Shown: piece after piece, positions 10,301 through 62,576 of the stretch | How positions within the stretch are numbered: position 1 is the stretch's first letter | Layout of the letters: every line of letters begins with the position of its first letter | Assembly (NCBI GenBank): GCA_900088475.1 | Contig: FLMG01003675.1 | Span: 56,028 to 120,027 of the forward strand | Length of the DNA: 64,000 nucleotides | From: Hyphochytrium catenoides | Taxonomy: Eukaryota > Protista > Hyphochytriomycota | Direction: 5' to 3' | The notes under the pieces: model-generated | Told to the model about the DNA's origin: nothing | The model's input: the letters and a program-made list of their open reading frames with translations, nothing else | Databases searched by the model: none | Translations under genes and position numbers: made by a program

Positions 10301-12484
10301 TACAATTTAGAGGTCGGGCGCCATTCGGCCCGATCCCTGGGCATGGAAGGAGAAGATATTGGGGAGATTATGACCGGTATGAAAGAGGTTGTGAGTGCCA
10401 TACGGCCAGTAGCGCTGGTTCTTGCACTAGGGAATGCCGGTAAGGAGAGACCTCAGATTAGGTGCACGCACTGCTTACTCGCTGCGGCGTTGGCGTCATT
10501 GCGACAAAATGTCAGCGTCTTGCTGGTAGATGAAGAGGGAAGAAGTAGCAGTACCATAGGTGGAGACTTCTACGACCGCTTTCTTCGGGAGGCAGTGACT
10601 TGGACATCTAGTACCCTGCAGAACGGGGCGGATATTCTTCTCTCGCTTCTCGGTCTAAGGATTACTGCGTGTAAGGCTCCTCCGAGTCTCTTCAAAGGGC
10701 TTCAAGAAGTAGAGATGAGAGCACTGGAAGAAGAGGGTATTCCATTGGCCCAGCTATCTCAGATAACTGACAACGCCAAGTGTGTCAATGCGAGAGCGTC
10801 GCTAGAGGCGCTTAAGGCTCCGGGAGAGAAGCGGTCCGTGTTACCTCGTCTTTCGTAATTCACCCCTCTTCACTGTCAGCTGGTTTCTCTTGACAGTCCA
10901 AACGTTGCCTCTTCTCTTGACTAACTGGACTGCTCTCTCGACATCTCATTCCTTTCATTCTCTAATATACCTTCAGATACCAGCTCGATCGAGCATCTCG
11001 GTCTTTGTGAACCCTTCCCTTAACTTATGGTCTTCCTTTGTATAACGGAAGTACTCCTGCGTCCGCCTACTGATTTCATTCTTGTCCTGCAGTGAAACTA
11101 GAGTCAGCACAGCTCTACCGCGTGTACTCTCTTGGCTCTCAATTGGCAATGGGAATAACGTGGTGGATCGCGCTCAATTCGATCGCCTCACATCCTCATT
11201 CACGCCCATACAATATGTATCAGAGTTCAAGCATCGCTGGTGTGATATTGAACGGAAGGAGGTGTCAAAGCAGAAGACTCCCTTTTCATCATCAACCTAC
11301 TGTAAGAATGGGAGTGCTACGGAGGTAGTGGGCATCTCCAAGGTAAAAAGAGAAGGCTTCCTGTCTCCCCTTTTGTCATGTTCCTACCTCAAGAAATCAG
11401 CTCTACGGAGTTTGCTCATCCCCTTCTAGTTTATAGGGGCGGGTGCACTCTCTTTCTCTGTCTACCCTTTCATCTGTCAAGATTACTCATGCCCTTCTCA
11501 TACCTCTTCAGCTCTCCTCTTGGTTTAGGTTCATTCAGACGTTCGAGACCCATTTCCTTCTGTCCAGCCTGCGGCTCTCGCACTGGCTTCTCACTCTAGA
11601 GAAGATGAAGACAATCCAGATGGTGCTCAGAGCTTCACGTTTGCCGGGAGGCAGCCCATTTCCTTTTCTTCTGGCCAGTCATCTGAATGGCACCAACGTC
11701 TTTGTCTTCGGGCCCAATAAAGGGGAACGACAGCGAGTCCGCGAACTCTCTCCCCTCTATGTAGAAAACCCCGTTTTCAAAAATCTGCATAACCCGCTAA
11801 GGTAAGAAAGTGCAATACAGGGAGGAGGTCGATGTAGCAGAATGGTAGATCCTAAGAAAGATTTAGGATCTTGCATGTACGCGGGGAACCATTTGGATGT
11901 CGCACACGTTCTCCTACATCGCACCCACTCTCCTTGCTTCGCTTTACGCGACCTACTTGGCTACTCTGACTCTGACTCTTTCCTCACTCCAATATAATTC
12001 ATGTTACAGGACCCACATGAAGGGAGTCTCTCGGGTGTATGCAGCGGAAAGTGAAACAGAGTCAATCTACTCCTTTCCTTCAGGATACTTTGACATCTAT
12101 ACGCTTGCAACTTCTCTACTGAGGCCAAGAGGAGAATCAGAACAGGAAAGAGGAGCCGGGTCCATGGACGTAGCAGAGTTGGTGAAGGAGGCCAAGTATT
12201 TAGTGAAAAAAGGAGGCTTCCTTGTCGCCTCTCTTTCACTAAGAAGGCAAAAAGAGGACGAATCTGCCCTTCGTGTCGCCTTGAAGGAGCTAAAGGAGGC
12301 AGGATTTCATTGGTTAGGTATAGAGGACAATCCCAAGAGCACCAGGCGCTTTACACAGTGGAATAGCCTCAGCAGAGATGAGGATGTGGACTTGTTCTCT
12401 GGATCGTCTTTGGATTGTGGGGAGCCGAGTTGCGAAGGATATGTACTAGTAACACTTATGATGCGCAGGTGCTCGATTGTATAA
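7315..12484 (+). CDS. Large secreted/membrane multi-exon glycosyltransferase (GT-A/GT2-like, similar to plant 'glycosyltransferase family 2' proteins) with a C-terminal putative SAM-methyltransferase-like domain
   Basis: Signal-like MLPVTLLFLPILALA (alternative starts 7234/7342). Spliced motifs YTAILTFYRRP..LCDQSHPPAEIWV, NLKYYGRFQVGLQVSTKYVAFLDDDCMPG (DxD), GLLGSIG, VDHLGGLWF, TAEDITFCYALKKYAGIPCY..VETWG. Last exon carries YFDIYTL...LVKEAKYLVKKGGFLVASL. Some internal exon borders are uncertain. Confidence 0.75.
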
Positions 12485-35081: not shown

Positions 35082-35851
35082 TATGCGTAGCTTACCCTCC
35101 ACGGTAGGCCAATGTGAAATAAAAGCCACTGAAACTCTTGGTCTAGTGAGCCATTGTCACTACATGTTTACCCTTCCGGTTTCGTCGGGGCCAGCAGGAT
35201 GACCCAATGACTACGGCTTTGCAGGCTGCAGATTGTCTCAAATGAAGTCGGGCCTCTGCACTTCTATCCTTGCCTCCCGACAAGTGTATCTGGCCTGGGA
35301 GGCCAGGGTCACAGTCTCGGATCATTGATCGTCTCCAAAAGCAATGACGTCCCACTCCTTGGTCCCTACAGTATAAGAAGCCATACACTTGGGGATTATT
35401 GGTTAAAAGGAGAGAAATGGGTGATTGTAACGGCTATATCCCAGATTATACCCGCCGTTTGCCTGGTAATTACCGCTTTAGCCTAGCAAACATCGTTTCG
35501 CGGCTGCTCAAAATCTTTCTTTGAGAAGGATGACGAATCACTTTCGATTGACATCTTTGACAGAAGTGAACGGCGGCACGCCTTGTTCATGAGATAATCC
35601 CTTTCTGTCGGTCATCCGCACTATGTCGCTCGCTTTCTCTCTTCAACACGATCCTCTGGCAACTGTTCAAAGTGAGGATCGCGCACAGGGGATCCGGTCG
35701 GCATGTCTATGATAGGAGAACAGATTGGATGAATGGAGATGTCCCTGAAGCAAAGGGGGATGGCTTTCCACTTTGCGTTACTCTTTGTAAGTTGGGATGC
35801 TGAGACATTGTAGGAGTTGCGCCTCGCGAATAAGTCGCCGCTCCATTGCGC

Positions 35852-38800
35852 ATGATGCATTTGCGGTCAGGTGGGTTGGGGAATGATATACCGGCCCCAC
35901 TGCGCGAGTACCATATCCTGGACAAGATCGGAGAAGGCTCCTTTGGCCAAGTCTACAAAGGAAGAAAACGCTTCAGTAGCCAAGTAGTGGCTTTGAAGTT
36001 CATCTCCAAGGACAGGAAGAGTACCAAGGACCTGTTGTCCCTGCGTAAGGAGATTGAGATCCACAGGAACCTCAGACATGAGAACGTGATTCTCATGCTT
36101 GATGCCTTTGAAACAGAAAGGGAGTTCTGCGTTGTTATAGAATATGGGCAAGGAGAGCTCTTTCAGATACTGGAGAATGACAGGAAGCTCCCGGAAAGCG
36201 AAGTCAGAAAGATTGGCAAGCAACTGGTACACGCGCTCCACTACTTGCACTCCAACAACATCGTTCACAGAGACCTTAAGCCGCAGAATATCCTGATCGG
36301 GGCTCGAGGAACCATAAAAATATGTGATTTCGGTTTTGCCAGAGCAATGTCCTCTCAGACCTCTGTCCTCACATCGGTTAAAGGGACGCCTCTGTACATG
36401 GCCCCGGAACTAGTAAAGGAGCAGAACTATAACCATAGGGCTGATCTCTGGTCTTTGGGCGTCATCCTCTACGAGCTGGCAGTAGGACGGCCGCCGTTCT
36501 ACACCAACAACATCTTTTCGCTCATTGAACTTATAGTCAACCGCACTGTCAACTACCCCGATTCGTTGTCGCCGACTTTTGTGCACTTTCTACAGGGTCT
36601 ACTGCAGAAGGATCCGGACCGCCGCCTATCTTGGCCTCAGTTGCTGGAGCACCCTTTCGTAGTAGAGACGGCTGAGGAAGCACAAGCCAGGGCAGAGAGG
36701 ATGGGTGCGGTTCCACCTTTCTCTCGCTTTGACCTTGTAAATGCCGTGCCCTTCACTTCATCCAGCATACCTTCTGCAGTGGCACCCAAGGCTTGGACAA
36801 GCCCCAGTAAGCTTACTACAATACCTGAGCCTCCGAGGCTAGTCAATGGTTTGCCTAAAGGGGAAAGAGGTGTAATCAGTGGGGATATACCTAAGTGGCC
36901 GCTCTGGGAGAAGTGGTTCCGTATCGCTAAGAAGAAAGCCTGGGAAATTGTGGAGGATGGCACATTCTGGCCACATGTCCGGCGAGTGATCTCCAGTGAC
37001 CTCTTGAGTCCTGAGAGCAGAGAGGAGATAGCGCTGGCGGTTAACACAATCAATCGTACTCTGAAAGGACTCGGATCAGGTAGACCTCCTATCTCTTTCC
37101 TGCTTCGACATGGCCTCTCACTAGCTTCGTCTTGTATGTTTCCTTTCTTTCTCTACTTGGATGCTGGCTGCTATTGGACTACTTCGGCTCACCTTATCAA
37201 GGCATCGAGATATGGAAGTGCTTCAGCCTGCTAATACATCTTGCTATGGGCAGATGAACATACTGGACTATCGTCAGCACAACGCAACCATTTTTTTGTG
37301 ACATGCAGAGAGCTTTATGGCCAATTTCTTGAGATCCTTGCCTCCTGTCTTAAAGTGGNNNNNNNNNNNNNNNNNNNNNNNNNNNNNNNNNNNNNNNNNN
37401 NNNNNNNNNNNNNCCCGCTGCTACTCTGAAGGGAGTCCTAGAATATGGCCAGGACCCAAGCAAGAAGTTACAGATCCGTGGAATAAAGTGGCTCATCGCA
37501 CTCGTCGACTTTCCAATCTCTCCAAAGGAGTTGTTTGGGCAAATCAGCGCCCATGGGCTGGCCTCGATACTCTGTGGGTATATTAGCTCTTGCGACATAT
37601 CTCTCATCGACATGGATGACTTTTTGTACGACCGAGAGGCCATCCCACCACCTTGCCGCCTTCTGACTTGGGCAATCAAAGGTCTAGGGCATTTGGTGGA
37701 TCCCCTAGGGCCAGTATGGGATGTAAACTATCCGTTTCCGCTGATCAAAGCCAAGGCGGCCGAAGGAGATGACGGAAATGCTCTTAATGGGCAAGCTAGT
37801 GGAAGCGGCACGCGAGCGATGGAAACCGGAACCTTAGAGTCGAGGCTGGAAGAGATGTTTTATCTTCGCCTCTCTAGTCCGCGCGATATGGCGCAGACTT
37901 TAAACAGATCAGCTGGGTGGGACGTCCTATTCTTTCTCTTTCAGAGTTTTGCGCGGTATGCCGTGGGCTTGCAGACCCAGAGCTTCGAAGCAGAGAAGGA
38001 CGAGAATGCGCCTAATTCTGTGCAGGCTCATGTCATCAAAATTATACTTCGTTGTCTCCATGTCTCAGAGACAACGGCAAGAAAGTTTATGCAATCCGAG
38101 GGATTCTCGAGAGCTTTTGGAGGTTGGGACGATGGAAAAAGAATTACACCGAACCTTGCTGCTGCAGTAGCGCTCATGAAGGGACGTGTCCCTCTTCTTT
38201 CTGTTACTTCGCAATCCCACATCCTGGAAATAGTGTCAATTCTCATCCGCAGAGCACTTCTATCTGGGGATGAGATCATGATCTGCCTCTCTCACGCTGC
38301 TGAGAGTGTCAAAAATACGAACGATATCCGAATCTGTGGCGCTGGAGCAGGCATCATGACAGAGGTCTTAGGGCTCATTCTTGGGGAGAAGAAGAGCATC
38401 GACTGGCTGAATCAGGCATCAATTGGACAGATCTTGGATCTGATAATTACGGAGAGCATGCAGGAATCTCTTTCTAGGCTTATCTCCATAAGGTTCGGAG
38501 AGCCTTCTGAAATTCAAGCTCGTAGGTACAGCGCCACGTTTGGGGTTCGCGTGAGAGGGATCGTCGATGAGGCCATTCTGCTTCTCCTACGACTATTGAA
38601 TGTTATTTGGGTTTATGGAAGTCTGGAGAAGTTTTACCATTGGTTCTTCAACAACGGATTATGGCCAGCCATCACACAGCAGTTGGCCTCAAATGGTGGC
38701 GCGGCTTCACCTCGAGCACTTTGGAATATGCTCCGGATAGTGAAAATAATCTTCAGCGAGGATTTCCAGGCCCCGTTGGAGCTGATGCTCAGATCAGATA

Positions 38801-39933
38801 AATTGATTCAGTCTGTCTGTCTACTCCTCCGCCCTGCTCATATCAGCATCCTATATCGATGGCCCGAGCCATTGGGAGGACGGAAGAGGGCGCTCGTTGT
38901 GCTTGTCCAGACTCTGGCAGAGATTATTGAGCTACCTATAAGGAGGGAGGCAGACGAAAGGCTCCTAATGGAGTTTCAGGCTATCTATCTCGACTGTGAC
39001 ATTGTGGGAAACTTCGTAAGAGCTTTACAGCTGGACGCTACGGACTCAGCTTCTTGGTTTTCGGTGGAAGAGGCAGAACTTCCAATCCAGGTCGTGACTC
39101 GGCTCCTCCTTTTGTCAGCAGAACGATTTGGTCAGCAATTTCTTGAGGCGGAAGGGATAAGAATGATGAAGGAGCTACACCTTCTACACTGGCAATCCCC
39201 ACACAATCTGCTTGTCAACGCGCTGTCCATTTTGTGTCAGGTGGCCCGGACTTCCCCTCAAGCATATCGAAACATTAGGGATTTAGACTTCAAGTCGGAA
39301 TTGTTCAGCCTGCTGGTGCATTCAGAGGCCTCTGTCGTGGCCGGGAAGATCTGCCACTTGGTGGGCTTGTTGTGCAAGCATTCGGCAATGTTCTATGAGC
39401 AGCTAGTGGAGCCAATGAAGGACGCGTCTGAGGACCCTCCCGTCATGAAGACCTTGTTGGACAAGATTATTGAGTGCTTTTGGGATGGCCAACCCATAAC
39501 CCGCAAATTTGCGTGCTTTGCCATAGGCAATGCTTCTTTCCATAACGCGTTTCTTTACGAGCAGCTCGAGCCAGCGATCCCATTTTTGGTGAGCGCATTG
39601 ACGGACCCGGACGAGCGGACGAGATCGAATGCTGCAGGGGCCCTTGGCAATCTAGTAAGGCACTCCGACGTTCTATGCGGTGCATTAGCTAGGGAAAGGG
39701 CTCCGGCGCAATTACTCCTACTCTCTCTTCAAGATACGGCGATCAGGACACAGAGAATTGCCCTTTTTGCGCTAGGAAATCTATGTGTCTACCAGCGATG
39801 TAGAGAGTCCTTGTCCATGGTTGGACCGGACTGGGGAGAAAGGCTTCAGAGACTGGCGCAGCCTGTGAACGATCCTGAATGTTCGAGGAATATTGCGAGG
39901 CTCTTTCACAAGCTCCAACAACCAGCGCTATGA
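35852..39933 (+). CDS. STK36: Fused-family Ser/Thr kinase (STK36/TIO) with C-terminal ARM/HEAT repeats
   Basis: [93 protein letters not shown]-terminal [20 protein letters not shown] and [21 protein letters not shown] intron at ~37080-37253 removes the TAA at 37232; the gene spans the N-gap. Confidence 0.93.
37359..37413. other. Assembly gap (55 N) inside STK36
   Basis: Run of n characters. The reading frames either side differ, so the gap size is inexact or hides an intron. Confidence 0.99.
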
Positions 39934-40266
39934 AGTGAGAAATAAGCCACCTCTTCCATGTAAGTATTTGTCTACGGGGTTCACATCTGAGAGCCAACGT
40001 ACTAAGCGGGAGGCTGAGGAGCTGAGAAGCGTTGCCGCTTTTGTACTATTAGCCTAAGCTGCTAAGCGATTATGCGCTAAGGAGTTCTTCCAGTCGCAAT
40101 ATTTACCGGTCGTCTTCTCGAATGCTATCTCACATACGAGGCGCATCATCAAAGTTTTGTCACCGTTCCGCTTCTCCCTCCCCATCCGTGCTAGAGTGCG
40201 TTGTCATCTTGAATCTGCTAAAGTGCTAGTAGCTCTTGTGCAGCCCAGACTCCGTATCGTCTGTTA

Positions 40267-40759
40267 TTATTCCTCTTCGTCTTCTGCCTTTCCATTGAAG
40301 CCATGCTTATGGGTAAGAAAGAGTTAAGGGTTCCACAGCGAAATAGTCTACCGACAAGCTGAATATATCAAAGACTCAGACTATTAGCGGATGAGAAGGA
40401 TATTTTTGGAACTGCCAGGCGAACACGATGATGCCGGTGCCTCCGAAAACAGTTAGGAAAGTGCCAATGCCTATCAACAGCGAGTTAGCCACCGCAATAA
40501 ATGTGCATTGAAAGCGGAAGGTAGTGTAACCTTACCTACGAGCTTCTTGCTGAACGGTTTTCCATCAAAGGTGAGATGATGCTGAGATAAGAAGACGCGT
40601 TTAGCACGGTGAAGAGATCAGAAAAACGCCAGTAAAGCTGCAACTCACATCGTGTCCATCGCCTCCAAGACGAGGCTGAGTGCGGCTGACGAAGTTCCGA
40701 GACTGCGTTCTAGGAGCCCCTAAAGGTGCTCTACGAGCAGCGATCCTGAGAGCGTTCAT
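40267..40759 (-). CDS. Small (89 aa) single-TM mitochondrial protein, probable cytochrome c oxidase subunit VIIc (COX7C/yeast Cox8)-like; 4 exons, missed by the ORF track
   Basis: Exons 40759-40649, 40581-40536, 40470-40404 and 40312-40267 give MNALRIAARRAPLGAPRTQSRNFVSRTQPRL (Arg-rich presequence) GGDGHDHHLTFDGKPFSKKLVGIGTFLTVFGGTGIIVFAWQFQNHKHGFNGKAEDEEE*. The family assignment comes from remembered similarity only. Confidence 0.8.
40313..40403 (-). other. U12-type (minor spliceosome) AT-AC intron, 91 nt
   Basis: 5' end ATATCCTTCT (40403-40394); branch sequence CCCTTAAC (40330-40323) about 10-12 nt from the 3' end; terminal AC (40314-40313). Removal restores the frame (AA|C = Asn). Confidence 0.88.
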
Positions 40760-41463
40760 TCTTCTTGATACACTTACGTGATAACCTTGTAGATCTGCAC
40801 CCTTGGAAGCTCAGGAGAAATCTCAACAATAAAAAGCTTCATCTTCCGGACGATGTAATTGATCTCCAGAAGCTGAGCGACAGAGACGCCGGTAGAGGAC
40901 CAATAACTCCGCCTTTATGTACCTAGGAAAATGGTATTGAGGAAGGCAAGAGGCTTATACGAGCAGCGACATAAATACGGAGTTCTGGCTAGGAAATGAC
41001 TGGCTTCATCAACTGGGCGGCTAACGGCTAACATGGCGGCGTACAACACTACAACAAACAACAATTAAACATACAGGGACGCACATCTCTTTGCTGTTCC
41101 AATAGACAGAGCCAAGCGAGGAATATGTGAATCATAAATAAGAATTCAATTCTCGCCAGGATAACCAAAATATGACCGTGATGATCAGGGATAACCTCCG
41201 GTCTTCGCTCCAGCAAATGTTGGATTCTGATGGATTGCTTGATGATGATTTATCTTGATGCGATGCTGCTCTGGACAAACAGAAGTGCATGAGCGGGCCG
41301 AGACCTCGCGGATCAAGAGCTTCAGAGAGCTTCAGATGTCAACTAACAGAGCTCATAGGCTGCCCTACGCTTTATCTTGGGCATCCGCTGCAAGGTTCAA
41401 GTACTTGTGAGGCTGGAAGCCTGGACGAAGGAGGCGCAGCTTCTTCGGAAATCGCTTGTAAAG

Positions 41464-45493: not shown

Positions 45494-48400
45494 CTATATC
45501 TGTCTTTTGTTGGCTCCTTTCCCCATCTTGAGTTGCTGCTTTGCCAGCTCCTGCACCCCAGAAGCCGAAAGCAGGTGCTTGAGCAGGTCGCGGGCTTCAC
45601 TGTCCATGCTCGTTATAACCTCACATAGCAAAGGGAACAACTGCAGGACGATATACGTTCCCACTTCCGCGCTTTCCGCTCTCTGTAGGACGTCCAACAG
45701 ATGGCTCAATACACGGACAAGACGGTGCTTGGGCAGCTCCAGGCCTGAAGGATCGAGGTCGGCCTCGCCGCCAGCTCTGGCTATTTCCTGGTGTGATTCT
45801 TCATTGAGGAAGGCCGAGATGCTGGTCGAGACGCATACAAGAAGCTGATTGGAAGCAGCCTGGGCGAAGCTCTCTTTGAATCGAGAGTTGTATGAGATCT
45901 GAAACAAACGCCTGAGGCACAAGTCGGAGCATTGCTTCCGTTGCGTAGGATCAATTCTCGCTGATGTCTCCGCTCCTCTCGGGACTCCCGACGCTTCAGC
46001 AAGGAATTCAACGACTCTATGTTGTACATCCGGTGGCACTTCTACCTTTTCATTCACAAGCCCTAAGTTGTCAATCAGCTGTTCTATGACCCAAACATCC
46101 CACTCTGGTGGTAGGCTGACAAGGCCGCTGGGCTTCAGTTCTGCCAAGTAGCAAGAACCCAGGATAAAGCAATCTATGGCCTATTAGAGGAGGTTCAGTC
46201 GGAGGCAAAGGCAAAGGTCAATGTAGGCCGTAGCAAAAGAGGGAATATGAGCTGGTCACAATGTCCTGCTGTGTGATGTAGATTAAGTAGGGAAGATAGA
46301 AGTTTTATAGTCGAAGTAAGGGCATATTTAGAGAATCAGAGCCATCGAAAATGCAAAAGCGAAGCATTTCACTGCAGAAAGAGATCTATAGACTCACCTT
46401 GACTATTGATAGAAGTACATCTGCGAGCTCTTTGCTGTTCAAAGACGCAGCTTCTGCGGTCAAAGGCGGCAAACCCACCCTCATCATGTGCACTAGGACT
46501 TCAATGCTACTGGAGTTCTCCCCATTATTGTCGGATTCGAAGGGCACCAGCGAAGAAGCTAACGGACCCAGGACCTGCACTCGGCAGGGCTCAGGAGTTT
46601 GCTCTGAGAAGGATAGGAGAAGTGCACGATTGACATCGCGGGAAAATTGTGCAGAAACACCTGGCTGCGCTTTAACCGCTAGCAGATGTTTGAACGCCTT
46701 GACCCACAGCTCTGGCCCACAAATTGAGGGGGAGAGGTCACGATAGAATTGAAGTGCCTCTTTCTGTATCGCCGTAACGCTGGGAGTGAACCTAGCTGAG
46801 CCTCCTGTCTTATGCTGGCCGTTGCTACTCGTTACGAGTCTGAAGAGGAGGTCCAAAAGAGTATTCATTGTCTCGGTGTTGCTAAACTCATTGAGCTTTG
46901 ATGTGCAGTAGAGCGCTGAAAGAGATCGAACAAGAGCAGCCCTCACTTCTACATCGTCATGGGACTCCAGCTCAGGAGCCACACTCTCGAAAGCTCTCCA
47001 AGTCTTTTGCCACAGTGGAAGGCTTCCACATTCATTTAACTCTTGTGGCTTCACGTCTCTATTACCTCCTGTGTCAGTGGTACTTTCAGAGTTGGCGACT
47101 GTTAGCGCCCCATCCACCACTTTCATTCCGACCGCTGCCCTGGAAGTTTGAGTCTGGGGAACACCTTCTACTGAGACCAGTTGAGCTAAGGTCTGCAAGC
47201 CAGATATACCTGAAATGGCTACTTCTTTCCTTGTGCCAGCTCCTGCAATGGCTCGCTTGCAAATGCTAATTGCCGAGTTCCACGCCGTTTCAAACCATTC
47301 TTGTTTCTGCAGAGCTTTCGTGAAGGCACGGAGTGTGCGAACTACACCTTGAATGCCGAGGACACGTGTTTCACTCCACTGCTTCTCCGCACTATCACGA
47401 CTGTGATGAACCAACATCTTTCCCCCGCCACTCTTACTGCCACTTGCCTTGCCACCCTCCTTTTCCTCCTGTATAGCGGCACTGGCAGTTACCTCAATCC
47501 GCTCGAGGAGCGGGAAGAAGACATTGAGGAAGAACCTCTGCCACTGAGCCGCTTGAAATTGTCCTCCGAGAGCGCAGGCTGTAGAAATGAGGGTATTAAG
47601 CGCACAATTCCTCACCTCTGGCCTTCCATCTAGGGACAGTCGCTGAAGCTCATCGAAGAGCTTTAACCATACATCTTCGACATTTGCTGTAGGGCCTCCA
47701 GTACCCTCCTTAGCCTTACTGTTGAGGAAGTCCGCAGAAGCCCAAAGCATATTGATAGCAGTAAGGCAAACATTAATATCTTCCTCTTGCCCTCCATAGC
47801 TGCCCACACACTCAAGGCAGAGATTGACGTCTTTTGAGGGAATGGTAGGCAGGAAGTCATCAACAATGAGCTGTACGCTCAAGAAGCCAGCTTTGACTCG
47901 TGACCCAGCGCTTCCCAGGCGTTTGCTTCCTCCTGCTGAGCTTGTCCCTGTGGAACCGGCATGCTCCACATTCTCACTGTTGATACCATCTGGTGCTGTG
48001 TTATTTGAGAGATCTGCCTCAGCGCTGCGAGATGGCGAGGCATGTAGAGCAACCTGCTTCAGCACACGAAAGACAATGGGCCACCCGATGTTCAATAGAT
48101 GGCCGCAGGATTGAAGAAAAGTATTAAGGCCCAGCAGAGTATTCTCCTGAACGTCAGAGCAGGAAGATGAGATGAACTTCTCCATCGGATACAGAAGTTG
48201 GTCCTGGAAGGAAGCAGGAACAGCATAGCTTGAAGAGTCTTTAGTGCTAACTGGCCCCGATGAGGAGCCTGACGAGGTCGATGGGACATAGGTCATTGCT
48301 GCAATCAGGAGCTGTGCGAAGGAGTCTGTGACGTATTGCCGAATGGTTGACTCCTTATGGTCCATGATAAGCCCGAAATGATCCGCCACTGTCGGCCAGA

Positions 48401-51397
48401 CAAGACCAATCCGGAAGATGTTGAGCCGAGAAATCTCCACCAGTTTCCTCAAGGCAAAGGGAGGAGAACGCGGTAGGGCCCTAGGTTGACCAAACATCAT
48501 AGACGGCTCGATAGTGAGATAGGTCGGAGTCTTCCAACTGGCGGAAGCGCCCGAGGCGCCAAGCATTGGCTTTGCGGTATTTGCCTTCTTACGCACATCT
48601 CGAGCTGCGGCTGCCGCCGCTGCTGCTGCAACCGCTGCGGCCTCATTAATAGGATTAGCAAGTGTCTGTGGGAGGGAAGAGGCAGACCACTGGATAGCCT
48701 GTATCTCAGTCTGCCCTTTCACTAACTGTGGCGCCTGAATATTTTTTATAACCTTCGATTTTGGGGAGTACTTCTCGATGTAGAGCTCACCAACAACCCC
48801 TAGACTGAAGGCAGAATATCCAGCCAGTGCCAAGGCGCCTTGAACCAGTGCTACATCCGACCAGTTGCGGCTCATCTCGAACAAAAGACGAGCAGACGCA
48901 GCAACCGACGCAAGTTCCCTATCCAGGTCCATTCCGCCTTGACTCTGGGACTGAGCAATAAGAGTTTTAGATAGAGAGAGTGCTTCAAACTCGTCAAGCG
49001 TCTCCAGGACACATCCCCAGGCATTACCGACGTTATAGTCCAGGCCTTTGATAATATCTAGAACGATCCTAAAGCACTGCGTGCTCTTCCACAGGGAAGA
49101 TGGACTAGTCTTGAATCCACTGGGACCTCTAATAGAAAGCGCGAAGCCACAGAGATAGCGAAGTAGCGTGTCTCTAAGTCCCTCTAGTCCAAGGTGACCG
49201 CAAGCAAGCCCAATGGAAAGCGAGGCCCTTAGAATAAGGTCCACAAGATATTGAGAGCTTTCGCAATAGGTTAACACGGCGCAGATCCCGCCCATGATTG
49301 GTTGGAAAATCACCTCCACCATAGTCATTAGGGGACCACAGCTGCTGCTGCTCACGGCGACAACAAATTTACTGGCTGCCTCCATTCCTTCGGCGAGAGA
49401 TAGTAGACATTGTACAGCCTGTCTGAAAGCACCATGGACATCTGGGACAGTGTGCTCCGGGTCGGCACTGAGAAGGGTGTCCAATGGCCTAGCTGGAGGT
49501 GTACCACTCTGGGCAAGCCCCAAGCCTTTCTGGGCTGTCTTCTGAACGTAGTCAACAATGGAGATTACTAAAGCGGTGACCAAGTCAGGTTTCGCCGGCT
49601 CGCTGTCGTAGCTACTAAACAGGGTCTGGAGTAGGTCGAATTTAGAACAGAGACGGAAGACTGTGTCCACTGTAAGTACCACCCGCCACTCGCTGACTGC
49701 AGCCTCTGCTCCACGGCTACTGCTGGAAGGAGTGAGAGGTTTCGCTCGGCTCGCGCTTGAGGACTTCTCCATCGTTGAAACGGATAGGGAAGAGCCTCCC
49801 GGCCCTATGTCCGATTTCCTTTCAGCCTCTTCTTTCTTAGAGAGCGTATTGATTAGGATTGCAAAAAGAGACTCGGCATGCTGGATGATGAGGTCCCCAA
49901 AGCCTGTTAGGACGGTTGAGGCAAGCTTGAACAACCGAAGTACGATACCTAGCTCCTGCTCCCATTCGAGAGTCGCCACTAGTAGTGGACAGATCTAGTG
50001 ACAGATAGCGGTAGTTAAGAAGAAGCAATGAGTGGAGACCGTGAAGACATGGAAGAAGAGGCTTAGCACCTACCTGTTGCTGCAGGAGCTCGGCAAAGGG
50101 CCTACTTCGGCGGAAGAGTTCCGGCTGCTTAGCCAAGATCGTGTCCAGCAATTCCAGGCCCAGTTCCTTGGAGATCATCACCTTCTTCAGCCAACTCGGA
50201 GGCAACCCTCGACTTTGCAGACAGAGATCCTATAATAGCGTGTGAGCAACGGCTATGTTCTCCTCTCCGCGTTAATTTGTTTTGTCCAAGGCCTCCCATG
50301 GTGACGGCCCGCCAAGTGTTCACGTCGTTTAGGGACTTCGCTTTAGAAACCTCGAACTCATCCTCTATACCTGAACCCTCGTTTCTTGCTCCCATATCTC
50401 TTAAGGCTATTTTTTTGTTTACCTGGAAAAGCAGATAAGCACTTCGGCTTGACCCTTCGAGGTTATCCGGATCAACTGTTCCCGAATAGCCAATATCCGC
50501 TGAGGTTAACCCTTCTGCTTTGGGAATGTTTGTTTGAGAGTTTGTCTCTCTTGACAGTTGTACTCGATCGTACAGGATCGTGATGACTTGGCTCAACGTG
50601 GCTGCGGCGGAGTTGTGGATTATCGCCTTGGGCATCATGTGCAGTCGGAAGCAAATCTGTTTGAAGCAATCATTGAGTCCTGTGTTGAGGCAAGGGAATT
50701 GATGAACGCTACAAACAACAATGAGACCCCATGAGCAAAGAAGCGAGGGGGACCAATATGGGTCCTGAACTATCCACGACTTCTAGCTAAAGTATGTTTA
50801 CCTCCAGTGATTGAGACAAGACGTCGTCATCTATGTCGAGTTTCTGATTGGTGGTCATCAAAAGCACCAGTGTTTGCATGACCTTCAGCTGAATGTCACT
50901 GCTTGCGCTTTCGCTCTGGATCACAAGAATACGGACGATGCTGGCGATATCTTCGGGACCAGTATTGTTAGCTGTAATCAACCTTTGAATGCCCCTGGCG
51001 AAGATAAGCAGACTGTCAGGAAACACGGCGCGAGGAGCGATACACAGGACTGGAGGACACCTAAACTCACCCCAGCGAAAGATTAACCACCTTCGAGCTG
51101 GCATCTCCGTGGTTGGCCGCCAAAAGAAACGGGCGGAGAACCTCCGGAGACTTGAACATGTTTACTGAAGGGGCGTGCTCCACACTGAGGGTACAGATGG
51201 AGCTAGAGTTAGCTGATTGGAAAAAGGGGCGTGTTCATTCGACACTGAACTCACCTTAGAGCTTTGGCATATGCTTCTCTCATTGACTTAAGTTTCAGCA
51301 TGGCCTGGTCGCATGAATCTTTCACCTCTGGGTACTTGCGTTTCGACTCGGACGCCAAGGTCTTGAGATCGTCCTCCACCACTCGAAGAAAGTCCAT
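45494..51397 (-). CDS. MON2: MON2 (Sec7-family-related endosome/Golgi scaffold; DCB, HUS, HDS domains), multi-exon
   Basis: Start MDFLRVVEDDLKTLASESKRKYPEVKD, EVLRPFLLA, IQLKVMQTL, IHNSAAATLSQVI, AYLLFQDLC, GFLSVQLIVDDFL, YGGQEEDINVCLTAINMLW, DGRPEVRNCA, MLVHHSRDSAEKQWSETRVL. Confidence 0.93.
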
Positions 51398-60614: not shown

Positions 60615-62576
60615 CTACATAACGCGACCTAGGGCAATAAATAATGAGAACAGAACTGCAAAAACACCAGTCTTGAGGGCATCATCCCGGCCTGGAAGAT
60701 ACGCAGAGGATTTCTTTGTCCCTTCGTCGTCGTCTGCCGGCATCGGCTTCCCTTGGCTAACTAGTTCCAATGACTTCACAGGGTTGCCTCCTAGATCAAT
60801 GCCAACATAGCCGCTTAACTTGTTCACAATATCTGAGCACTTGTATTCGGGAGTGTCAACACAAGGTTTGTCGCAGGCATTTGCGTAGTCCTGGACCTTT
60901 GACAGGTCTTTGGGGAGGTATCCTAAGCGGTGTGCGTTAAAAAAGTCCCAGTAGGGGTCCATGCTTTCAGTCTTGAAGTTCCAAAACATGTAGCCATCGC
61001 CCTTAGACCAGGCGCTAAGCTGTCTCCTAGTCAGCTCCTTGACAAGCCCGTCTGGGAGCAGCCTTGTAGTTGAACAGAAGCAGTCCTTTGTGGCACCTCG
61101 ACCACCGGAGATCACTGCATCCAATACTTCGGGGACAGCAGGGCTGCAACCTTGGCATTTCCTGACTGAACACTCGTGTAGCTCGGCGTTCTTCCCTACC
61201 CCGTGCCATCCTGCTAGCCACATGTTGCAAGAGTCCATAGCGAGGGACCACTCTCCAATCAGATTGCGAATACCTGCCTTTCTAAACTTCGCGATCTTCT
61301 CTCCTGCCTCGCAGATCAACTGGAAAGTCTTGTTGACCGTATCAAAAGGCTCACTGAAGCCGAAGTAGATGTGTGAATCCAATGTGACTTGGCTAGGAGG
61401 TCCAGGTAATCCGTTGGCACCACCCCAAACATCGACGTATCCTTGGAAAGAGTCATGGTATGCGCGTTTCCATTTTGGCGCCACAGTTGTCAATACCTTC
61501 TCTGCTTTTGCATAGAATTCCTTGAGTGCAGGAATAGGGGTAGTCCATATAGGTTCGTTGATTACATCCATAATGCCAACGACTCCAGGGTTCGACCCGT
61601 GGCGCTTACCCATGGCTTCAAGAACGTCTAGCGTGTGCTGTACGTTCTCCTCGGACGGCTTGCCAACCTTGTAGTGCTCCGCCCTTGGCCATTGCGTAGC
61701 ACTAGTGTTGCTGTATAGCATGTACATTTCTTCTGGACTGTCATCTGCAACCAATAACCAAGATGGATTGGCAACTTTCTCATAGAGGCCTACGCCAACC
61801 CACTTTACGTCCCTGGCCTGTCCGGAGTGATCCCAACCATTCTGTCCGCCCTTCGTGGAGTGCAAGTCCATCCAAACACCAATCTTATACTTGGCAGCCC
61901 ACTTGATTAGCTGATCTACCATGTCCAAGCTGCCATCAAAGCAGCCCCCCTCGAAGGCCCCATGGGGAATGTACATCCAGTCCCCAACCACCAGCCGCAC
62001 GGAATTGATCCCGGTCTCGGCCAGCTTCTTGAAGTCCTTCTCGCTAACAAATCGCTTCCAAAACGCCCTCAGTTGCTTATTGGCCTCCTTTGGACCTAGG
62101 ACCTGACAGAAAGTGTATGTGTCAATGGCAGTCTTTTCCGGTGGCTTGTTCTCAAACTGCCAGAAAAGGCTTGGATTAACCCATGGCTCCAGCACGAACA
62201 AGCCCCCTAGATTCACTCCGCGAACGTTCCAGCTGTCTGTTATTGGCGGCGCGGGAACAACACCTGCGTTTGGTGTTGGAGCCGGTGTCACGGGTTGCCC
62301 TGGGACGTCCTGACCGGGAGGAATGGCGGGAGGAACAGCTGGGTTTTTTTGAACAGGATTCGGAGTAGGGGCTGCAGTTGGCAGCTTGGGGGCGGGTGTT
62401 GGCTGACCAGGAACTGGGGTTGGCACTGCTGGTACCGCCGGTACTTGTGGTGGCGAGGGCGCAGGTACTTGTGGTGGCGATGGCGCAGGAGGCAGTACTT
62501 GACCTAATGCGCCAGGAGGATAGAGAATGGCCGTAAGACCAAGTGTAAGGACTGGTAGGAACTGAGACCCCACCAT
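60615..62576 (-). CDS. Secreted, probably GPI/membrane-anchored glycoside hydrolase family 5 exo-beta-1,3-glucanase with Pro-rich N-terminal linker; intronless
   Basis: Signal peptide, PAPSPPQV repeats, VRGVNLGGLFVLEPWVNPSLF, GINSVRL, DLHSTKGGQNGWDHSG, acid/base VINEP, DSHIY, nucleophile IGEWS, FWNFKTE, hydrophobic C-terminus. Confidence 0.93.
   Translation of the reverse strand: MVGSQFLPVLTLGLTAILYPPGALGQVLPPAPSPPQVPAPSPPQVPAVPAVPTPVPGQPTPAPKLPTAAPTPNPVQKNPAVPPAIPPGQDVPGQPVTPAPTPNAGVVPAPPITDSWNVRGVNLGGLFVLEPWVNPSLFWQFENKPPEKTAIDTYTFCQVLGPKEANKQLRAFWKRFVSEKDFKKLAETGINSVRLVVGDWMYIPHGAFEGGCFDGSLDMVDQLIKWAAKYKIGVWMDLHSTKGGQNGWDHSGQARDVKWVGVGLYEKVANPSWLLVADDSPEEMYMLYSNTSATQWPRAEHYKVGKPSEENVQHTLDVLEAMGKRHGSNPGVVGIMDVINEPIWTTPIPALKEFYAKAEKVLTTVAPKWKRAYHDSFQGYVDVWGGANGLPGPPSQVTLDSHIYFGFSEPFDTVNKTFQLICEAGEKIAKFRKAGIRNLIGEWSLAMDSCNMWLAGWHGVGKNAELHECSVRKCQGCSPAVPEVLDAVISGGRGATKDCFCSTTRLLPDGLVKELTRRQLSAWSKGDGYMFWNFKTESMDPYWDFFNAHRLGYLPKDLSKVQDYANACDKPCVDTPEYKCSDIVNKLSGYVGIDLGGNPVKSLELVSQGKPMPADDDEGTKKSSAYLPGRDDALKTGVFAVLFSLFIALGRVM

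Follow-up and report, generated by a model that had tools for sequence, protein, structure and literature searches.

A very probable U12-dependent AT-AC intron in a small nuclear gene of Hyphochytrium catenoides

The classical AT-AC class of minor introns in animals and plants was defined by Hall & Padgett and by Tarn & Steitz (both as cited in PMC10639083), and introns of the U12 type follow the consensus /RTATCCTTT at the 5' splice site and UCCUUAACU at the branch site (PMC2846911). Eukaryotes have repeatedly lost the minor spliceosome; diatoms, other Ochrophyta and alveolates are examples (PMC2846911; PMC10639083), and no minor introns have been found in Ochrophyta or alveolates (PMC10639083). 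In Phytophthora, a handful of minor introns as well as the minor snRNAs are established (PMC2846911), and minor introns are reported to number dozens in Saprolegnia and hundreds in Blastocystis, where 77% of them are of the AT-AC kind (PMC10639083).

The locus described here lies in a 64-kb stretch of the genome of the protist H. catenoides; the whole stretch is referred to as the window, and positions are counted from its first nucleotide. It contains a small nuclear gene whose third and last intron, at 40403-40313 on the minus strand, is very likely a genuine U12-dependent AT-AC intron. This reading draws on the following observations: the intron carries the expected signals, its excision restores the frame, the gene is expressed with introns 1 and 2 spliced, and the 91-nt stretch is missing from the mRNA of a relative.

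Gene model and signals of the third intron

Logan contigs of four RNA runs (X1, X2, X3 and X5) were aligned on positions 39600-41400, and the features of the gene are collected in Table 1. Reading from the sequence, the start codon is the first in-frame ATG downstream of a TGA, and the mRNA reaches at least as far as 40822 at its 5' end, as seen in the X1 contig.

Table 1. Features of the four-exon gene and of its third intron, in the order of transcription.
Feature	Position	Strand	Description and basis
Coding region, four exons	40267..40759	(-)	270-nt spliced CDS, in frame, 89 aa; read from the minus strand
Exon 1	40649..40759	(-)	begins at ATG 40759
Intron 1, U2-type GT-AG, 67 nt	40582..40648	(-)	GTGAGT...CTAAA...CAG; joint 40581/40649 in RNA contigs of X1, X2, X5
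Exon 2	40536..40581	(-)	sequence assembly and RNA contigs
Intron 2, U2-type GT-AG, 65 nt	40471..40535	(-)	GTAAGG...CTAAC...TAG; 65-nt skip in X2, X3, X5
Exon 3	40404..40470	(-)	codes for the transmembrane segment; 3' end TTC CAA AA
Intron 3, very likely U12-type AT-AC, 91 nt	40313..40403	(-)	signals, and a relative's RNA contig without exactly 91 nt
5' splice site of intron 3, ATATCCTTC	40395..40403	(-)	8/9 match to consensus
Branch-site box of intron 3, CCCTTAACT	40322..40330	(-)	consensus TCCTTAACT; 8/9 match
3' terminal AC of intron 3	40313..40314	(-)	read from sequence
Exon 4, stop included	40267..40312	(-)	(AA)C CAT AAG CAT GGC TTC ... GAA TAA; codes for NHKHGFNGKAEDEEE and a stop

The 3' end of exon 3 places intron 3 in phase 2, between AA and C of one codon. 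Splicing in silico yields an 89-aa ORF that ends in FQNHKHGFNGKAEDEEE and a stop, whereas with intron 3 kept the frame reads FQKYPSHPLIV and meets a stop after 10 codons. This switch of frame by excision had been proposed in an initial annotation of the DNA and was reproduced at the same coordinates, and all of the U12-type signals which that annotation had described for an AT-AC intron at 40313-40403 were found where it had placed them, with the exon join backed by the RNA contig of a relative. Its further claim that other introns are GT-AG agrees with both upstream introns of the gene, the splicing of which is seen in RNA contigs. Gene finders limited to GT-AG will truncate the gene or miss it, ending it at the read-through stop with the last 15 residues lost.

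Intron 3 begins with AT at 40403-40402 and thus has AT-AC termini. The likely branch A, the second A of CCCTTAACT, is at 40324 and precedes the first base of exon 4 by 12 nt; the distance from the box to the end of the intron is 10 nt. In U12-type introns, the branch A usually lies about 10-15 nt from the 3' splice site. The donor, the branch box, the branch-to-3' distance and the AT-AC termini of intron 3 are all those of a U12-type intron.

AT-AC introns of the U2 type exist in other eukaryotes, with U1-like (ATAAGT-like) donors and no TCCTTAAC box. Intron 3 could be one of these rare cases, real but removed by the major spliceosome and hence of no bearing on the minor one, a reading that would fit the fact that no minor snRNA was seen in the window: Rfam searches of these 64 kb returned no family of any kind, U11, U12, U4atac and U6atac included, either with the gathering thresholds or with a cut-off of E <= 1. 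It is nevertheless highly improbable, as both U12 boxes are near-perfect, the branch-to-3' distance is short as is typical of U12 introns, and the donor is sharply unlike the GTGAGT and GTAAGG of the U2 introns in the same gene. Minor-specific spliceosomal proteins were not found within the 64-kb window either. If intron 3 is U12-dependent, as we prefer to read it, its consensus sequence makes a working minor spliceosome in this genome a reasonable expectation, and each well-supported U12 intron strengthens the case that this protist has kept one.

Chance expectation and the RNA evidence for the exon join

The octamer RTATCCTT occurs four times on the two strands of the window, against about 3.9 expected by a uniform-base estimate (128,000 sites / 32,768), so that by itself the octamer carries no significance. 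Only the copy at 40403 is accompanied at the right spacing by a branch-site motif and AC; the three others, at 12442 (-), 55988 (+) and 61437 (+), lack both a neighbouring branch-site box and a coding context, and are chance occurrences. The composite pattern (donor, CCTTAAC within 500 nt, and AC or AG 8-14 nt further on) is present once in the real window and in 4% of 400 Markov-1 random windows if AT-AC or GT-AG is allowed, or 1% if strict AT-AC is required, figures that count the motif alone and ask for neither coding context nor RNA support. A relaxed motif scan of the 64-kb window gave no convincing further U12-type intron.

These numbers bear on the possibility that the motifs co-occur by chance, the gene ending at FQKYPSHPLIV and "exon 4" being 3' UTR or non-coding. 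The octamer by itself stands at its chance rate, the C-terminus has no homologue support from Pfam or from a word-indexed protein search, and the frequency of the composite in random windows means that a scan of more than 1000 windows would meet a few such cases by chance, so that coding context and RNA evidence decide the case. Both argue against coincidence: the motif is placed exactly at the break and restoration of the frame, the RNA contig of a relative passes straight from exon 3 to sequence resembling exon 4 with the 91 nt gone, and the differences within exon 4 show a codon-position pattern which points to coding sequence. Chance co-occurrence is therefore very unlikely, and the genuine U12-type intron remains the preferred reading.

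The X1 contig is near-identical to the genomic sequence (1 mismatch in 215 nt, 99.5%); it has intron 1 spliced exactly, and its coverage stops short of exons 3-4. The contigs of X2, X3 and X5, runs of which two are plant metatranscriptomes and one is from another organism, are about 91-95% identical and hence represent a close relative. Across them, introns 1 and 2 are spliced as modelled, the plus-strand ends CT..AC corresponding to GT..AG on the minus strand. Together, the contigs of the four runs cover exons 1-3, and the gene is thus expressed. One X3 contig (record 6) has a loose end that is made up of the beginning of exon 2. Transcripts of about 91-95% identity were seen at 39645-39855 and 40400-40822 in RNA runs of at least three separate studies, two of them plant metatranscriptomic, and their presence in plant metatranscriptomes suggests that a close relative lives on or in plants.

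The join of exons 3 and 4 is spanned by a single 60-nt contig (X3 record 4) of low depth (3.7), which comes from a plant metatranscriptome, belongs to a relative about 92% identical and carries no formal aligner joint. In this contig, 34 nt align at 40433-40400 and the other 26 nt, at the low-coordinate side, are unaligned; the reverse complement of the latter, AAGCATGGATTTACCGGAAAGGCAGA, has its sole good match in the window at 40283-40308, within exon 4, with 4 mismatches as compared with 9 for the next best. The contig thus extends across the border of exons 3 and 4, and what it skips is exactly 91 nt, as much as the proposed intron measures. The aligner extended it by 4 nt into the intron (40403-40400), an overrun that is expected if the mRNA has CCAT where the genome has ATAT. 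The cut could fall in five registers; read from the sequence, none of them would leave GT-AG or GC-AG, and recognised termini (AT-AC) result only from a cut at 40404^40312. The 4 differences from the relative in the 26 nt of exon 4 consist of two synonymous third-position changes and two that form one N-to-T change, the peptide being HKHGFNGKA here and HKHGFTGKA in the relative; as they follow codon positions, they argue for coding constraint in the predicted frame. In relatives' DNA or cDNA, two metagenome-contig scans with degenerate patterns from exons 3 and 4 gave no match.

In X3, the contig of exons 2-3 (depth 9.7) ends exactly at the border of exon 3 and intron 3, at 40404, and the spliced continuation is the separate contig of depth 3.7, with a 30-nt overlap between the two. 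The pattern looks like a fork in the assembly graph, which may stem from intron-retaining transcripts or from strain variation. In animals, the splicing of minor introns is often slow, and the fork-like contig ends would suit a regulated switch in which many transcripts keep intron 3 and either encode an 84-aa isoform with the tail KYPSHPLIV or decay, such that minor splicing tunes the output of the protein. We regard such a switch as unlikely, given that the fork could equally reflect strain variation or low coverage, that no intron-carrying contig is among those aligned and that contig depths are no measure of isoform ratios. The idea that slow minor splicing limits the output of the protein, being thereby rate-limiting, is speculation.

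The host protein and the neighbouring genes

The first 33 aa of the spliced product include 7 R/K, no D/E and 4 S/T and have no hydrophobic signal-peptide core, and this Arg-rich, acid-free N-terminus, rich in hydroxylated residues, has the composition of a mitochondrial presequence. A single, strongly hydrophobic segment spans residues 51-69 (Kyte-Doolittle maximum 2.0), and the tail is acidic. Judged from composition only, the 89-aa product is in all likelihood a small protein of the mitochondrial inner membrane.

The more specific label of a respiratory-chain subunit, given in the initial annotation, found no support in the searches. Neither the spliced 89-aa protein (E <= 1) nor its exon pieces matched Pfam, no homologues turned up among 5.8 billion proteins in a word-indexed search, and all that the PDB yielded was noise from aquaporin transmembrane segments and one weak match to an 'AGGG' protein, the Chlamydomonas complex I chain 9f5x_a (E 0.43, over the N-terminal stretch). 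Three families were considered and rejected. For COX7C/Cox8 (PF02935), suspected from the motifs H..DG.PF and Q..K.G.F, the real protein scored -0.5 bits, at about rank 240 among 1000 shuffles, with an HMM made locally from three PDB-verified chains (1occ_L, 6t0b_h and 8ucj_h). For COX7A (PF02238), z was 0.5 against bovine COX7A1 (1occ_J), with no Pfam match, and for NDUFB2/AGGG of complex I, z was -0.7 against the NDUFB2 chain 5lnk_u, next to the insignificant E value of 9f5x_a. In all, pairwise shuffle tests against COX7C, Cox8, NDUFB2 and COX7A1 gave z from -0.9 to 2.0, the reference chains 1occ_L, 6t0b_h, 5lnk_u and 1occ_J having been confirmed as exact PDB matches; none of the tests for these subunits was significant.

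The 3' end of the small gene faces a convergent gene on the plus strand. At 35846-39933 (+), an ORF with a protein-kinase domain (Pkinase, 270 bits) lies about 300 nt ahead of a second one, 800 aa long, that carries HEAT/Armadillo repeats, and the two probably make up one gene for a kinase-plus-HEAT protein; its sole database match is from Capitella teleta, at 31% identity and with the same domain combination. On the other side, a single-exon ORF of 1197 aa at 46386-49979 (-) has Mon2_C and Sec7-like HDS domains and is a Mon2 homologue. Among 1.84 billion representative proteins, its best relative is 35% identical, and its best named matches are from Phytophthora kernoviae and the dinoflagellate Durusdinium. 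These matches hint at a SAR-like or oomycete-like host and would fit a protist whose near relatives are missing from the protein libraries searched. Further along, a 653-aa ORF at 60615-62576 (-) has a weak match to the GH5 cellulase domain, at E 7e-6.

Proposed splicing and comparison with known systems

By the accepted scheme of minor splicing, ATATCCTT at the start of intron 3 would base-pair first with U11 snRNA and then with U6atac, and CCTTAAC would base-pair with U12 snRNA, which would bulge out the branch adenosine. The exons would then be joined at 40404^40312, restoring the codon AAC, and the mature mRNA would be translated into the 89-aa protein with its Arg-rich presequence, one transmembrane helix and short acidic tail. 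Intron 3 would in this way depend on the minor spliceosome and be spliced in H. catenoides itself, as the RNA contig suggests for the relative, and the product would presumably be located in mitochondria.

A more far-reaching proposal, prompted by the absence of any relative of the Mon2 gene above 35% identity, is that the intron belongs to a deep-branching SAR-type host beyond the oomycete genera in which minor introns are known, perhaps with an AT-AC-biased set of them as in Blastocystis. It would further make the product of the host gene a small membrane protein of mitochondria that is specific to the lineage and has its C-terminus switched by intron retention. The proposal is doubtful; if the part on a deep-branching host were true, the known range of the minor spliceosome would be extended.

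In its size, its predicted cleavable, Arg-rich presequence, its single C-terminal transmembrane helix and its short charged tail, the host protein resembles the small single-pass OXPHOS subunits (COX7C/Cox8, COX7A and NDUFB2/AGGG), from which it differs in that profile, pairwise and Pfam comparisons give no significant sequence similarity. In contrast to the classical AT-AC minor introns of animals and plants, the intron described here is much shorter, with 91 nt. It shares the AT-AC terminal dinucleotides with U2-type AT-AC introns; however, these have neither the TATCCTT donor nor the branch box TCCTTAAC, both of which are present in intron 3. The closest likeness is to the AT-AC introns of oomycetes and other stramenopiles, with which it has in common /ATATCCTT at the 5' splice site, CCTTAAC, a short branch-to-3' distance and the AC terminus, as well as its rarity among mostly short GT-AG introns, and the lineage is apparently related. 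Unlike in those cases, the host gene here encodes a small orphan-like membrane protein for which no orthologue was detected, and the distance of the neighbouring Mon2 gene from its best relative indicates that the host is not a standard oomycete. As minor introns have been described before in Phytophthora, Saprolegnia and Blastocystis, the intron of H. catenoides is confirmatory rather than surprising; it is of use for annotation and adds to the data on minor splicing in its lineage.
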